Below are positions 49,621 to 58,200 of a stretch of 64,000 bases of DNA, in pieces (within the stretch, counting starts at the first letter, position 1; each line of letters begins with the position of its first letter). The DNA is taken from the NCBI RefSeq assembly GCF_040938485.1, contig NW_027271100.1, positions 2,232,001 through 2,296,000 on the forward strand. Reading direction: 5' to 3'. Source of the stretch: Diadema antillarum. Taxonomy: Eukaryota. Under the pieces are notes generated by a model, which made no database searches, had not been told where the DNA came from, and saw only the letters and a program-made list of their open reading frames with translations. The position numbers were made by a program, and so were the translations under genes.

Positions 49621-50239
49621 CTACCTCTAATAGCCCCTACAAAACTACAGGCCGACAATTTTTATACGCCATGCTCATATCTCTACACATTCTTGTCCAA
49701 CAATACAAAAACAGTCTTATTTTAGCATAACATGAAAGGGACACAAGCAAATCTGCTTTGCGTTCAGGTGCATGGAATCCATTCTGCTGAGCCAACTGTG
49801 ATGGTAAATATAACTACCTATCACTACCACCACCACCGCCATCTCCATTATTTTTTTACCAAAACCCACACAGGTCGACAAAAATGTTAACCCCCATGTT
49901 CATATCACTACACATTCTCGTCCAACTGTGATGGTATAAAATACCTACAGTAATAAATGCCAAATTATTTTTAAAAAATCTTATCACGGCTCTACTGGTA
50001 TCTACGTGGGCATTCCTGTACATAGCCCACGCAGTTTAAAAAAAAAAAGAAGAAGAATGCTGTAATCAGTGACAGTAAACTACATCCTACTTATTGTTCG
50101 TATTCCCTTATTTGTAATGTGATTTTTGAGCAACGATGATGCGTCAAAGAGTTTGTTCGAGAATGACCAATGTTCGGGAAAAAAATAATGTCTCAAAGCG
50201 GACATTCAGGCATGTGCTACATTATAATATTCTACTTGA

Positions 50240-50312
50240 CAATAATAATAATAATAATACTACATTTATAAAGCGCATAATAAGCACATGCTTCTCTATG
50301 CGCTGTACAATT
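50240..50312 (-). mobile_element. L2/CR1-type LINE 3' terminus
   Basis: The minus strand reads gcgcatagagaagcatgtgcttattatgcgctttataaatgtag followed by (TAT)n, the typical L2/CR1 end stem-loop and tail. Confidence 0.6.
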
Positions 50313-51110
50313 CAGATACAACATACAAACAAATGACTAACAAATGGTTAAAAACAATTATTGTGAGCTCATCCTATTAACAGTGTTTGTGTGAGGTGTA
50401 CGTTAGATCTCGGGTACTCCATTAAGTAGGCCAACTGAAATTCGACAGAGGAGCAATTTGAGCCTTCGTTTTGGAGTATGGGTGGGGCGTGACACTTGTA
50501 TTCTTCCATTTAGCGCCTATGCCTCCCTGCCTTCAATGTGGAATGAATAAGTAGCCTACGTGTAGAAGCCTTGACAAGAAACCGTGATATTCTCACGCAG
50601 TCCGTATAGAAAACCCGGATTACGTTTTCCATTGTTAACTCCAGTCTTTTGAACTTCTGTAAATCCTCGACCACACTGCAAGAATACTTGGTGTCAAAGT
50701 TCCTTTTCAATGACGCTTAAGGTGTATTGAAACTGCCATAACTAGTCACGACCTGTTGTATACACAATCACTAAAACTCTGGGATTGTGGTTTCCATGTG
50801 ATTAATTCTTTCCTTTGTAGCTACATCGTGGGCACTCGATCCGGACAAGTAATAATTTGGTCTCCAGACGCAAGTCCTTTTTCACATAAACCGGATTTAA
50901 CACTCATACAATGTGATTGTGCTGTTGGACACTGTTATCTCTACATTTTGTAAGAGATAGCGGCTGGCAAGAAAAGACTAGGCTACTCGAACTGATGAAA
51001 ACTGTCCTTAAGCTCAATATTTTGGAGAAAGTGGCTGTCAAGAAAAGACTAGGTTGCTCGGGAATCATTCATGCAGAACACCCAAAAGTCAATAAAAGAG
51101 ATGCAACCCC

Positions 51111-52614
51111 CGGCGTAACCCTGCATTTCTCTCGATGCAGGAGTAGGCAGATGACATCATTTCCGGATCCCTGTCCCCTTCCTTCCGTTGTATATATATC
51201 ATTGTAAATATGAAAATAAATGTAATTTGCTTTTTTGTAAATAATTTAAAGTAGTTTAGGTTTTTATAATTAAATTTCAGGCATATCTGAATAATTATAT
51301 TTTTTGGAGCAAATTGCCCACCCGGCAGAGAGCTCCACAATCTAAAACAACAACAACAACGGTGGTCGGGGGTTGCCGATAAGGCAACTAGAGGCGCCTG
51401 ACCCCGGGAAAGGCCAAGACATCACCGGCGTCGGCGGGCGGGTCCTATACCTGCTTTGCCGACGGGAACGGCGTAACCCTGCATTTCTCTCGATGCAGGA
51501 GTAGGCAGATGACATCATTTCCGGAACCCTGTCCCCTTCCTTCCGTTGTATATATATCATTGTAAATATGAAAATAAATGTAATTTGGTTTTTTGTAAAT
51601 AATTTAAAGTAGTTTAGGTTTTTATAATTAAATTTCAGGCATATCTGAATAATTATATTTTTTGGAGCAAATTGCCTACCCGGCAGAGAGCTCCACAATC
51701 TAAAACAACAACAACAACGGTGGTCGGGGGTTGGGCTCCCCGGCCCAATGCCGACAAGAAGAGGCGCAGGAAGAGGAAGGAGAGCTACGGCATCTACATC
51801 TACAAGGTTCTGAAGCAAGTCCACCCAGATACTGGAATTTCGAGTCGCGCCATGTCCATCATGAACAGCTTCGTCAACGACATTTTCGAACGCATCGCCG
51901 CCGAAGCTGCCCGTCTCGGTCAGTACAACAAGAAGTCGACCATCAGCAGCCGTGAAGTGCAGACCGCAGTGCGCCTCCTTCTCCCCGGAGAACTGGCAAA
52001 GCACGCCGTCAGCGAGGGCACCAAAGCTGTCACCAAGTACACTACATCCAAGTAGATGTCCACAGTCGCCTCTAATCCAAACGGCCCTTATCAGGTTGGT
52101 AACGGGCTGACCCTATGTCAGAGAGAGGAGCTCAGCACCCTCCACCCCCCTAGCTGTCTGTCTTCTCGTTCTGTCTTCACCCTTTCCGCTATTCTTCTAT
52201 CAACACTTCTCTTCCACGATGTCTCTGCCTACTAGGCTAATAATAATTAACACCTAGGCCGATAAGGCAACTAGAGGCGCCTGACCCCGGGAAAGGCCAA
52301 GACATCACCGGCGTCGGCGGGCGGGTCCTATACCTGCTTTGCCGACGGGAACGGCGTAACCCTGCATTTCTCTCGATGCAGGAGTAGGCAGATGACATCA
52401 TTTCCGGAACCCTGTCCCCTTCCTTCCTTTGTATATATATCATTGTAAATATGAAAATAAATGTAATTTGGTTTTTTGTAAATAATTTAAAGTAGTTTAG
52501 GTTTTTATAATTAAATTTCAGGCATATCTGAATAATTATATTTTTTGGAGCAAATTGCCCACCCGGCAGAGAGCTCCACAATCTAAAACAACAACAACAA
52601 CAACGGTGGTCGGG
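51111..52614 (+). repeat. Three direct copies of a ~358-bp repeat unit: 5'-truncated copy 51111-51374, full copies 51375-51732 and 52258-52614
   Basis: The copies are near-identical (1-2 private substitutions each, different (AAC)n length). Full copies start gccgataagg and all end ...aaaacaacaacaacaac-ggtggtcggg. The unit has a GC-rich hairpin-forming 5' half and an AT-rich 3' half. The H2B fragment and a 162-bp pyrimidine-rich segment lie between copies 2 and 3. Confidence 0.95.
51734..52095 (+). pseudogene. H2B: 5'-truncated histone H2B (echinoid late-type) orphon ending in a truncated histone stem-loop
   Basis: Translation reads [106 protein letters not shown] (stop 52053-52055). The native ATG and N-terminal tail are missing; the track's 'MPTRQ...' start is a TTG inside the upstream repeat. 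The 3' UTR has AAAC-GGCCCT-TATC-AGG (52079-52095), i.e. the stem-loop without its last GCC. Confidence 0.95.
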
Positions 52615-53210
52615 CGGAATTCTCCCTGGTTGTCGCCGTGAGCGGACGCGCCGCACAAGCCCTCGCGCAACCGCGGACGCAAAAACACAAGCACGAACAC
52701 ACCAACACCGCCACCACCACCACCACCACCCACACCCCAACCCAGCAAGCACACAATGCCAAACGCAACCATAAGCCTACAGCCAAACAGCAGAAGCATG
52801 ACACCAAAGTAGTGCAAATAATAAAGCATAGCAGCATCAATTATAAAACTCATCGTAAATCCTATCTATCACCATGCCATCACAACCACGACACATGCCA
52901 TTTGCTCTCAATTCAGTAAATACAGTAAACACCTATTGTTTAATTCTTCACCTTCCATGCATTTTTCTCAAAATCTTTGAAATAACTCCAATTCCACACC
53001 CTGTTTACAATTAGCACGGCTTAAATCGTTTAATTCTTCACCTTTCATGCATTTGTCTCCAACAAAATAAACAGGCTTACAGCAAGTCAGATTTTTTTTT
53101 TCGTTTTAGGCCTATCCTGACATTCAGATTTTTGCCGCCATTTTAAATACATGTATATAAAAGGATTCAGGAGTTGAACGCAGCAGATTTGGACGCAGCA
53201 TCCTCTGCGC

Positions 53211-54110
53211 CCTGATGTATTCATCGAGACTATGGACGCGCAAACTGTGGTGTCAAATGGCGCCTCTTGAAAGACACGTACGGCCTAAACCGTGCTTGCC
53301 TCCTAAGCTCGGGGCTGGGACAGTCCGTACTCGTAATGTGAACGATCTGGACGAGGGATCCAATCTTACTGCCGAGTTTATGAGGAGGCAGAGTATCCCC
53401 GTCAAGGGCTACATCGATCGCCAGTCCTCTTCCAATGCTTGAGGTTTGTTCCACTGGAGTCCGAGACCTGAGGTTGTAAGGCTATACCAGCCCACAGTGC
53501 ACACCCCAGTGAGGTCTCCCCAATTTTTTTTCCTTGTATGTACTGCATCTTTAATTCACTGTGACTGTTACAATTATAAGTGCTATTTCATGTACAGATT
53601 TTGACATAGTTGATGGGGTGTGGGGTAGAAGACCTGTGGGTCACGGTAATCAACTTTACCTTTTCTTGCCCTTGGCAGCCCGGTTTTCTATTTCACAATC
53701 TAGGGTTTTTTTATTTATTTTTTTCATTTGTGCTTTGTTTCTGTGTTATAACTTATCTTTGTTATGCTGAATCAAATGTGTTTTGTGTTCACCCATTTAC
53801 ACATGTCTGAAAACAACAACAACAACAACAATAACTGCAGCGCTTATAGCAGGGAAAGATCCAACGCTGGAGACGAATCTTCCACTATCAGGACTCGTGA
53901 AATCAGCTTCCTGATGTATTCATCGAGTGTGTGCACACTTGCTCTCGTGTCAAACGGTGCCTTTTCAAAGACACGTATGGCTCAAACCGTGATTACCTCT
54001 ACAGTTCGAAGCGGGGAGTGGACAGTCCGTACAGTAGAGTTGACGATCAGCGCACACCCCTAGCAAGGAGAGATCCAGCACTGGGGACGAATGTCCCACT
54101 ATCAGGGCCT
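53211..54110. repeat. Diverged paralogous modules: cctgatgtattcatcgag...ggacagtccgtac...acgatc at 53211 and 53910; gca.gga.agatcca..ctgg.gacgaat.t.ccactatcagg at ~53849 and ~54063
   Basis: Direct by-eye alignment. The two short motifs are 214 bp apart, which is not a codon multiple, and no reading frame is conserved. Confidence 0.8.
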
Positions 54111-55297: not shown

Positions 55298-58200
55298 TAT
55301 CATGTTTTAAAAAGAAATTCAAAATCAAACTTATTCATTTGTACACCCTTTAATCATATCTCCGCGAATATTCCCTTCTTTTTGTGTCGTGTTTAATGTC
55401 ATAATAATCTCTTTAGTAATAACTTTATTTTGTGAGATTTCTTGAGATAAGCCATGATTAGGCCTTTTGTTAGTCTTTCGCGTTTGATATTATCTTGTCT
55501 CAGTTTTCACCTTTGTATCTTATCAGTGAAAAAAATGTGAAGTAAATGAACTTGGACTTAATATAGGCCTACTTATATACATTATATGCTTATATACATT
55601 TATTATATCTTACATTATATATCATTATCATGATCTACATTATCATTTTATATAAAGCACAGATTGACACGAAGTGATTTAGTCCTGAATTAAATCTTCC
55701 AATCTTTATTTGCTCTATTTGCTTTATCTTATGTGACCAGAATCATCAAGATTATATCTCAGTTTTTTATTCTCAGTTCCTTAGAAGAAATATCATGATA
55801 ATAATACTATGTGTTGTGTTATTGAATATATTCAGTTGAATATCATGTTGAATAATACAACAAACTACTGACTCAATGGAATTTAAACTTTGTTTCTCAC
55901 TTTCTTTGTCACTTCCCCGTGCTCTGTTGTTCACACTTTTCTTTAATCATCACCACCATTATCGTCACTATAGCCTTCGCCGTGGGCTTCCATTCATTCA
56001 TTTTCTACTTTTTCTCTACATTTTCTTCTAGGCCTATTATTTCTTCTGCTCCAACTTCTTATTTACAGTTCTTTCAGTCTTGCCTTGTCCTGTATTAAAA
56101 CCCTTTTTTCGCATTCGCAATGATATATTCACCGGTACAATTACGCTGGCCTAACGAGAGTTGAGGATCTCTGAACAAATACGACTTCATACAGGGCCCG
56201 GATAGAGGAAAGACTGTCACTCGCCTGTGGCAGTCCGAAGACGTCAGGATGGCCGAGTAGTTCTGTTGAGAACATGGGTAAATAGTGAAAGGTGATCGAC
56301 GCCGTTCGACTGCACTGATTTGGCCGTAAATGTTCCAGTTCGATCAATCCGTTATACATTGAAAAGACGGTTTGAATGATGTATGTATCAAAATTAGTGA
56401 CAAGGGAGACGGATAAAGCGAAGACAATGTCAGACAAACAAACGGAAACAAAAACAACAAAAAAGGAAAGGGCAAACTGTAAAATCGCCCTCTTTCGATG
56501 AATACATTTAACAATACGCGATTCTGATTCCTTCATCTTCTTGCAGGCATCCTACGCACTGACCAGCCACATTTTAGAACATAAAGACAAAAAGTATGCA
56601 TATTGTTTGACAAGTCGTTCAATCATTTTAATTGCAAACGAAAACACTATAGCACATTATTTCGTTGTTACAATTATCCATTCTGACTTCTAAGAATCAA
56701 ATTTCATTTTTAAGGCTGGCTTTGATGCTGATGATGGATCAGCCATTTGTAGCCTCATGATAACAAAAGCTGAAAATCAGTCTATCACTCNNNNNNNNNN
56801 NNNNNNNNNNNNNNNNNNNNNNNNNNNNNNNNNNNNNNNNNNNNNNNNNNNNNNNNNNNNNNNNNNNNNNNNNNNNNNNNNNNNNNNNNNNNNNNNNNNN
56901 NNNNNNNNNNNNNNNNNNNNNNNNNNNNNNNNNNNNNNNNNNNNNNNNNNNNNNNNNNNNNNNNNNNNNNNNNNNNNNNNNNNNNNNNNNNNNNNNNNNN
57001 NNCTATCGTCCTAACTTTCTCTCAACACACATGAGAGTAATAGTGTTGTTATTTTCCTTCTATTGTTCTTGTGTTGAGCAGGTGGTCATAAAACACAGCA
57101 ATCCCAGAAAAATTAATGAAATATGTCCCTAGTAGAGAAATGAGCAAATTTCATCCGTTCCTCATTGTTTGTTTCTGGCGTCAGGGATAGGGTATGACGC
57201 CGATAGATCATTACTAGGAACAAATGAAACGAAATGAAATGAACTGAAAAAGTAATATAATTTTAACACCTTCACAAGCAGGAAATGGGATACTTCTGTC
57301 CATGGGCATCCAATCAGCAACAAAACTTGTCAAATCCTCACCACGACTTCTCATCTTTCATTTCCAACATGCAACAATTGCTTGGCTCAAACAATGAAGA
57401 TCATGGGGTTTTTTATCTTCTTTTTGGAAGAATATCAATACCTGGGCTGTCTTCTTCTTTTAAGCTCGGGTTTTTTTTTCTGTTTGGCAGCTTCATCTGA
57501 CTTTGCCGTACACCATAGAAGTTCCCCTTTGCCAAGAAACAGTGTCATGCTGCCGTTCAAGGGAACCCACACACAACCAACAATGGAGGGAAATGTGTTA
57601 TGTGCAAATTCAATTCACATGTAAGGAGCGCGTAGCATTGTATGCATAGTGTTTTACCCCCCCCCCCACACACACACACACTCAATATATATGATAATAT
57701 GAATTTTTTTCCTTCCAGTTTGTCATGTCAATGCACATGCATAATTATGACCCCCACCCCCCCCCCAAAAAAAAAAAAAAAAAAAAGAGGTGAAAATACG
57801 AGATAACGATGTGCAGGAACAGAACCATCGTTGTCGGCTCACCAAGCTGAATTTCAAGAATTTGGCGTTTCTCTTCGTTGTTCTTTTTATGTAGAAAAGG
57901 GCACCATAAAGTATATAAAAAGAAAATAAGTATAAGAAAATAAAATGAAAAAAAAAAACTACGCCTATAATGACGAGATGGGAGTAGAGGTTCAAGGCGG
58001 GATTAAAATGTCATCTCAGATATAATATAACATGTCATAATCATTTCTTTTTACACAATTTTGTTTATAAAATGAAGAGATGTTGGACCATTTAGGCCAC
58101 ATATTCTTGCGTCCTGGTCTTGAAAGTCAGCTTTGAGGCATGAATCTGAACACATTGATGTTCCACAAATGACGTGAGTTTTCTGTAGTACATTGTCAAG

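Follow-up and report, generated by a model that had tools for sequence, protein, structure and literature searches.

The array of repeated segments analyzed here occupies positions 51111-52614 of a 64,000-nucleotide stretch of the Diadema antillarum genome (RefSeq assembly GCF_040938485.1, contig NW_027271100.1, positions 2,232,001 to 2,296,000, forward strand), referred to below as the window. It is probably the product of three separate target-primed insertions of one long interspersed nuclear element (LINE), named E here, at a single nucleotide of an older interspersed repeat, named T, 22 nt past a TATA-like box; the oldest of the three would be a chimera, produced by a template jump of the reverse transcriptase (RT) from LINE RNA onto a histone H2B mRNA. 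An earlier note, based on the letters of the window, had described a co-oriented series A-A-H2B-X-A in which each A is followed by GGTGGTCGGG, and this order (A1 - A2 - H2B - X - A3, all in the same orientation) is confirmed in the assembly (Table 1). The identity of the parts, the target origin of the spacers between them, the reuse of the insertion site and its association with TATA-like boxes are matters of direct observation.

A first look at the genome gave at least 347 matches to segment A, many of them 97-100% identical, and all but one stop at a (CAA)n run, at base 344 of 358. X, which the earlier note had treated as a separate 162-bp unit, lies directly upstream of A in more than 25 other genomic copies, where similarity then extends for kilobases. 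A full-length copy of E (L050) encodes 349 aa in ORF1 and 1258 aa in ORF2, the latter with AP-endonuclease (APE), reverse transcriptase and RNase H domains, and closes with a 3' untranslated region (3'UTR) of ~810 nt and a (CAA)n tail. A and X are contiguous parts of this single ~6-kb LINE, and not separate units; because they are contiguous in other copies, X-A3 (X, 52096-52257; A3, 52258-52604) is to be read as one 5'-truncated copy. A1, A2 and X+A3 are three 5'-truncated copies of E, each with a different truncation, retaining ~250, 344 and 509 nt of its 3' end, respectively; the periodic stretch measures 622 bp, against a period of 358 bp. The possibility that A is a SINE-like unit was rejected, A being the last 344 nt of a 6-kb LINE. 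The private substitutions reported by the earlier note are real, one each in A1, A2 and X+A3, and H2B has one of its own; A1 also carries a subfamily variant, C, found in 10 of 30 copies, at a single site where A2 and A3 have G. E is apparently a young and active LINE family.

The sequence gccgataagg, previously given as the start of both full A copies, is the start of A2 only and of one other copy (L011) among 21, and was rejected as a preferred 5' end. A ~505-nt 3' form of E is recurrent: it starts at (T)TGGTAACGGG in about ten independent copies, some with clear target site duplications (TSDs), its carriers being the window copy at 52096, L013, L026/L081, L079, L082, L086, L088, L089/L030, L094, L095, L107 and L112. 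Two allelic E copies stutter, with (ACGGGCTG)n, at the 5' end of this form, and the data suggest that RT regularly exhausts its template there. A stable RNA hairpin was considered as the cause of this 5' end and rejected, the fold being no better than those of shuffled sequences (z = 0.64). An Rfam scan of positions 50000-54000, on both strands and at E<=1, returned no family, including no self-cleaving ribozyme at a unit boundary; HDV-like and hammerhead ribozymes at gccgataagg or at the X start were rejected on this ground.

Both flanks of the array (50720-51112 and 52605 onward) belong to T, for which 161 first-look candidates, 70-78% identical, were collected. Six uninterrupted T copies read ...aataaaagagatgcaaccccc/GGATGGTCGGGCGGAATTCTCCCTGG at the insertion point (i.e. 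...gcaacccccGGATGGTCGGGCGGAATTC; here and below a slash marks a nick or a junction), the native target in empty T copies being GG(A)TGGTCGGGCGGAATTC; the G at the second position of GGTGGTCGGG is private to the T copy of the window. Since uninterrupted T copies carry it natively, the GGTGGTCGGG found after each A is T target DNA, and not element sequence; its last copy (52605-52614) continues into CGGAATTC. The earlier note had read the common A end ...ggtggtcggg(ggtt) as the end of the element, which is marked instead by (CAA)n, GGTGGTCGGG being T target. In the 1.75-Gb assembly, which includes both haplotypes, neither a CAA tail followed by GGTGGTCGGG nor the 14-mer GGTGGTCGGGGGTT beside such a tail occurs anywhere else. 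This context being unique to the window locus, the spacers are local DNA, and an RNA importing this end is excluded; GGTGGTCGGG(GGTT) was rejected both as an RNA 3' end and as a 3' transduction from a donor, as (CAA)n closes the other copies, the 10-mer belongs to T and no donor was found. Both internal spacers consist of GGTGGTCGGG followed by GGTTG, that is, 10 nt of local target and a 5-nt filler. Within the spacer, GGGGGTTG is the reverse complement of CAACCCCC, the end of T-left, and the filler looks templated, in inverted form, from the adjacent target end.

This T position is an insertion hot spot. The E insertion found there in L035/L036 features a 13-nt TSD, GATGGTCGGGCGG, which fits the 14-15-nt spacer of the window, and other elements occupy the same position in L034/L037, L073, L074 and L110, at least five further insertions in all when L035/L036 is included. 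Within the window, the chimera (H2B+X+A3) is flanked by a TSD, GGTGGTCGGG being present at 51719-51728 and at 52605-52614, with the filler following the 5' copy. At the same T position, L037 (C1265) holds a small inverted-repeat element with (CCCTAA)n telomere-like repeats, at cccccGGATG/, which adjoins another (CAA)n-tailed element; in L110 (C173) an E tail is followed by a C16 run and then by ATGGTCGGG.

The H2B fragment is identical, at 361 of 362 positions, to the H2B gene of a tandem histone repeat with a period of ~7.07-7.09 kb (323 first-look candidates), in which H3 follows H2B on the same strand, and which presumably resembles the early-type histone repeat of echinoids. This repeat is the parent, and not a 'late' H2B gene, as had been proposed; the sole difference, a C at 51767, is unique in the genome. 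The fragment covers codons 19-124 and 40 nt of the 3'UTR, and lacks promoter, 5'UTR and codons 1-18. It ends with ...GGCCCTTATCAGG, where the repeat goes on with GCCACCA, so that the GCC of the stem and ACCA are missing: the 3' end falls 3 nt into the 3' side of the stem-loop (AGG of AGGGCC), 7 nt short of the ACCA end. In human cells the commonest 3'hExo/TUT7 decay intermediate ends at exactly this point (position 7, a G lying 3 nt inside the stem), and is usually uridylated (PMC5066620). For a DNA fragment taken from a repeat 7 kb long, such an end would be a rare coincidence, so that an RNA origin of the H2B piece is strongly favoured.

The junction between H2B and E, CAGG/TTGGTAACGGG, is an end-to-end join whose two parts meet directly, no target copy intervening; at most one T is ambiguous, and may either belong to E or be a U appended to the histone RNA. 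Searched as a 23-nt pattern, with up to 2 mismatches, in the whole assembly, it was found once, in the window. Neither end of the H2B fragment carries histone-repeat spacer or promoter DNA. E does sit beside H2B in genuine histone repeat units, and the earlier note had held that such a neighbourhood would speak against its reading, but the junction there is different, and because of this difference the window is not a copy of the E/H2B arrangement of the histone repeat. The best explanation for the H2B piece is that a histone mRNA was reverse-transcribed and joined to LINE RNA by an RT template jump. As for the route from histone mRNA to orphon suggested earlier, the retro-copying of a non-polyadenylated H2B mRNA is supported, while a complete-gene orphon does not, given the missing promoter, 5'UTR and first 18 codons.

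The most interesting outcome of the analysis, which falls outside what the earlier note had claimed, is the TATA-linked integration of a young LINE, with repeated hits in histone promoters. Inside histone repeat units E copies were found at three positions, and at each of them the first-strand nick lies 21-23 nt past the start of a TATA box: site 1, 68 nt upstream of the H2B ATG (L010, L016, L024), site 2, with three hits featuring different 5' truncations (L006, L007, L011), and site 3 (L008/L049). These young copies, located on contigs C654, C52, C1966, C1743 and C1488, separate the TATA box from the cap site in three different histone promoters. At least 5-6 independent histone hits were counted among ~35 young copies, far above the expectation for a repeat making up roughly 0.1-0.3% of the genome. 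From box to nick, the histone sites, T and another reused repeat, T2, read TATAAAAGaggagagggggcag/GTGACC, TATAAATGggtgcggaaacaatc/AGCGGGG, TATAAAATgggagctgaatgtcc/GGCGG, AATAAAAGagatgcaacccccg/G(A/G)TGG and TATAAAAGaatgtgatacag/ATTCATCAA.

In a first set, 11 of 14 TSD-defined nicks have their best, or tied-best, match to TATAWAWR starting at -20 to -26, and a reused site, T3, has TATTTAAG at -24, as judged by eye. A prospective set was then formed by 17 further short copies, fetched through their tail sequence only, 15 of which are independent. All 15 sites match TATAWAWR in at least 6 of 8 positions at -27 to -19, versus 18 of 90 control windows taken from the same sequences (binomial 3e-11), and 10 of 15 reach at least 7 of 8, versus 4 of 90 (binomial 7e-11). 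When strong matches were collected over -60 to -8, 19 out of 22 were found to start at -27 to -20, with a mode at -23/-22. The sequences flanking the nick vary among E sites; the common feature is the TATA-like box ~22 nt upstream. E insertions are thus associated with TATA-like boxes located ~22-23 bp upstream, an association observed at ~30 sites of one genome. A literature search found no LINE reported to target at a fixed distance from a TATA box.

We tentatively propose that E is guided by a promoter landmark, nicking ~22 bp past a pol II TATA box and ahead of the cap site, in most cases in sense orientation, and that it may read the box either directly or via TBP/TFIID. Since it lies upstream of the nick, the TATA box survives each insertion, which would account both for the repeated use of one site and for the polarity of the window stack, with the newest copy beside the box. 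If the proposal is correct, the histone promoters, present in several hundred copies, would be the main niche of E, as rDNA is for R1 and R2; promoterless truncated E copies could be transcribed from the captured TATA box; and the target would be automatically regenerated, so that insertions stack. The E 3'UTR holds TTTTTATATCCC, starting ~20-24 nt upstream of the 5' end of the ~505-nt form (at UUGGUAACGGG), a spacing equal to that of the TATA rule, but the match on its own is within chance; the same nucleic-acid-binding activity might, if the proposal holds, explain that 5' end via this motif.

Two other stacks were detected. In the first (L020-L019-L025, at 386-390 kb of C796) three units are found, with CATAGCTTC in each junction; in the second (L018, C1031:33.5 kb) two E or E-like units are separated by CTTGCTCATT. 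In both, the downstream-most unit is the most diverged. Two of the C796 units have an identical 5' truncation, and unequal exchange has probably enlarged part of this stack at a later time. A reused E site in another repeat family is shared by L111 (C481) and L121 (C539), with TATAATAA at -42. At the 5' junction of L011 (C654:1296767 region) the E copy is preceded by 2.5 copies of its 16-nt target, AACAATCAGCGGGGAT, and in L006 part of the TSD has been copied again; repeated target stretches of this kind, containing no insert, may be footprints of aborted integration at the same nick.

A second contig, C55, probably represents the second haplotype: for 19 kb or more it is co-linear with the window, at 98-100% identity apart from a few indels. 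Missing from it are the whole array and 171 bp of T, 119 bp on the left side and 52 bp on the right. The earlier note had proposed a comparison with an empty allele, but C55 was rejected as such: it is a deletion allele, devoid of those 171 bp of T, and does not show the native target. Because C55 lacks it, the array is polymorphic or very young. Two more indels between the window and C55 (L099, L100) lie at 50244-50353 (~110 bp) and 56791-57002 (~212 bp), and the identity of the two sequences drops from ~100% near the array to 98.0% at 42.5-48.6 kb.

These data can be arranged into a history in which we infer the order of events, the template jump and the way in which the TATA box is read. 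The endonuclease would be positioned by the upstream TATA-like box; each insertion would keep the box and a fresh target copy, and the next one, at the same nick, would displace the older copies downstream. In the first step, a ~505-nt E 3' RNA would have been copied to its 5' end, where RT would have jumped to the 3' end of an H2B mRNA, trimmed to 3 nt into the stem-loop, and copied it back to codon 19; the cDNA would have been joined to the target via a 10-nt target copy and the filler GGTTG, with CAACC as inverted template. In the second step, a 344-nt E copy would have entered at the same nick, duplicating 14-15 nt (GGTGGTCGGGGGTT(G)), filler included, and it is because this duplication took in the filler that two junctions would contain an identical string. 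In the third step, a ~250-nt E copy of another subfamily would have joined T-left by a CGG microhomology (51111-51113), with no TSD. A chimera-first order is favoured, because the reverse would require the 5-nt filler to arise twice beside a CAA tail, which offers no template for it.

Several points weigh against this history and the targeting linked to it. The insertion order follows from TSD logic only, and the four segments, having one private change each, provide no age ranking; for the same reason, a ranking of the three insertions by substitutions was rejected. The leftmost junction has no TSD and, the other haplotype having lost the site, the native sequence of the T copy of the window cannot be checked. 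The match of the filler to inverted CAACC could be due to chance (about 1e-3). The array is carried by one assembly contig, and no Logan short contig bridges an internal junction; Logan contigs are short and break at repeats, and one of them runs leftward from 52615 for 38 nt, entering the last junction of tail and target. No TATA-like box is found at -22 in the site shared by L111 and L121, in L117, in L020 or in L026. Finally, the orientation of the box is clear for T, T2 and the histone promoters, but statistically unresolved in the prospective set, where the two strands are inseparable because many boxes are near-palindromic.

Other origins of the array have to be weighed against three separate insertions. 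It is unlikely that a single episode produced it, the unligated T-left nick being re-used as primer by further E ribonucleoproteins once each cDNA had been joined to the upstream target copy, all within one cell cycle and with target DNA and RNAs alternating as templates. The equally low private divergence of all four segments, the absence of the array as a block from the other haplotype and the circumstance that, after target-copy fill-in, the 3' end at the nick is again the starting primer sequence (...CCCGACCACC) would all fit. However, the same 15-nt spacer would have to be templated twice from already paired DNA, A1 appears to derive from RNA of a different E subfamily, and ordinary re-insertion with a 13-15-nt TSD, such as is seen at the same site elsewhere, explains the same facts. 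The model put forward by the earlier note, in which one cDNA was made by serial 5'-end-to-3'-end jumps among the free RNAs A, X, H2B, A and A, we regard as highly improbable, even if R2-type RTs jump in vitro (PMC8857657), double jumps are documented in fungal LINE chimeras (PMC2104539) and the H2B/E join has exactly this form. X is not an independent RNA, the two other joins consist of 10 nt of local target plus filler, with no donor carrying the GGTGGTCGGGGGTT flank in the assembly, and A1, A2 and H2B begin internally rather than at RNA 5' ends. Template jumping is thus supported for the H2B/E junction only, and not for the A-A and A-H2B joins; one event copying all five parts in series is likewise unsupported, these joins bearing the TSD signature of repeated insertion, with which the different subfamily variant of A1 agrees.

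An origin at the DNA level, whether by unequal exchange or slippage of one insertion or by use of histone DNA as filler in break repair, is very unlikely: identical 5' truncations in the C796 units do point to later unequal exchange there, and E copies do occur inside histone repeats, but in the window three E copies have three 5' ends, a 622-bp stretch at a 358-bp period is no simple duplication, and H2B, both ends of which are free of histone-repeat spacer or promoter DNA, breaks off inside the stem-loop, at a position known from RNA decay that makes up just a few nt of the 7-kb repeat. That the H2B-E RNA was pre-made, either by RtcB-like RNA ligation or as the transcript of an unsampled locus with the ~505-nt form inserted in the H2B stem-loop, is decidedly improbable, although U6/L1 chimeras are ligated before retrotransposition (PMC6789731) and the discrete 5' end of the short form could stem from RNA cleavage. 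No donor junction was found in the 1.75 Gb, both haplotypes included, nor any ribozyme or other Rfam family in the region scanned. Moreover, a histone end trimmed by 3'hExo has a 3'-OH, while RtcB needs a cyclic phosphate, which counts against ligation by this enzyme. Lastly, an assembly artefact, which the single contig and the lack of a bridging Logan contig might suggest, is barely credible: the junctions display the details of LINE integration, namely target copies, microsatellite tail and 5' truncations, a Logan contig does reach 38 nt into the last of them, and a 1.5-kb structure is far below long-read length.

Table 1. Features of the array and of its surroundings (positions refer to the window)
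Feature	Positions	Strand	Description
T-left	50720-51112	+	upstream half of the old interspersed repeat T; ends ...gatgcaaccccc(g) at the insertion point
TATA-like box AATAAAAG	51091-51098	+	22 nt upstream of the first-strand nick; putative targeting determinant
A1	51113-51360 (start placed 51111/51114)	+	5'-truncated; last ~250 nt of LINE E and (CAA)5
Spacer 1	51361-51375	+	GGTGGTCGGG (target copy) and GGTT(G); read as 14-15-nt TSD of insertion 2
A2	51375-51718	+	last 344 nt of LINE E, tail (CAA)5; read as second insertion
Spacer 2	51719-51733	+	GGTGGTCGGG and GGTTG; read as 5' target copy and inverted filler of the chimeric insertion
H2B retro-fragment	51734-52095	+	third base of codon 18 to stop (52053-52055), and 40 nt of 3'UTR
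X+A3	52096-52604	+	single 509-nt copy of LINE E 3'UTR ('E-short'), tail (CAA)6; starts with TTGGTAACGGG
T-right	52605-52700, continuing beyond	+	GGTGGTCGGGCGGAATTCTCCCTGG...; downstream half of repeat T
Stretch absent from C55	50992-52656		1,665 bp; 50991 joins 52657 with 1-2 nt microhomology

Downstream of T-right the window contains a direct repeat (53204-53330 and 53903-54032, ~700-bp spacing, 76-79% identical) and an (AAC)n run (53802-53835), which are possibly another pair of old retroelement ends.

Stacked LINE insertions at a regenerating hot spot are a known kind of structure. R1 arrays feature 33-nt rDNA duplications between units, and tail-to-internal dimers have been described for P-element and non-LTR elements (McGurk and Barbash 2018, PMC5932611); a target copy in the junction, together with different 5' truncations, is the signature of multiple insertion at one site (PMC5932611). 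The window shares with these tandems the tail-to-internal junctions, the distinct 5' truncations and the presence of a target copy in each junction. Unlike in R1 tandems, the target of E is no gene-specific sequence but a point within an interspersed repeat, ~22 nt past a TATA-like box, and the spacer contains a 5-nt inverted filler, itself duplicated. Concatemers of LINE 3' ends with a constant short 'tail' would then be stacked insertions with their target copies, rather than products of RNA-to-RNA jumps. No Rfam ribozyme being found at E<=1 in 50000-54000, the units of the window also differ from ribozyme-bounded tandems, such as retrozymes, Penelope-like elements and HDV-like 5' ribozymes.

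The H2B capture has its own precedents. Template-switch chimeras, such as U6/L1 in mammals and the bi- and tripartite MGL chimeras in Magnaporthe (PMC4476161, PMC2104539, PMC11838501), likewise have a cellular RNA 5' of a truncated LINE, and the chimera of the window resembles the U6/L1 type in the same orientation of its parts, the direct join, the LINE tail and the target copies at both ends. In contrast to that type, the RNA captured here is a replication-dependent, non-polyadenylated histone mRNA, taken at the 3' end of a decay intermediate; E ends in (CAA)n and encodes an RNase H domain; and the starting point of the jump would have been the recurrent, discrete 5' end of a short 3' form. 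As in jumping by the R2 RT (PMC8857657), the H2B/E junction joins a 5' end to a 3' end with at most one extra nucleotide; unlike R2, E is an APE-type LINE, and one out of three joins has the form of an R2 jump. The window would thus provide an example, at the sequence level, of a poly(A)-less histone mRNA retro-copied by a jump onto a decay intermediate trimmed within the stem-loop.

Such a capture is one testable route to dispersed histone pseudogenes and orphon-like copies. The sea urchin histone orphons, reportedly described by Childs and coworkers in 1981, are said to be solitary histone sequences located away from the tandem cluster and near-identical to the cluster copies. The H2B of the window is likewise solitary and nearly identical to cluster copies; unlike the orphons, it is a promoterless retro-pseudogene with an RNA-type 3' end, and not a dispersed functional gene.

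The putative targeting of E bears on how tandem histone clusters tolerate or purge insertions, and is probably the most useful outcome of this analysis. TRE5-A of Dictyostelium inserts ~48 bp upstream of tRNA genes, and yeast Ty3 at the pol III start, via TBP-containing TFIIIB (PMC6101501, PMC5911963). E resembles both in its fixed distance from a promoter landmark and in its recurrent positions in multicopy genes; unlike them, it has as landmark a pol II-type TATA box, with the nick between the box and the cap site. Sequence-specific LINEs, such as R1, R2 and Tx1, have one conserved nick sequence in one host gene, a feature which E does not share.

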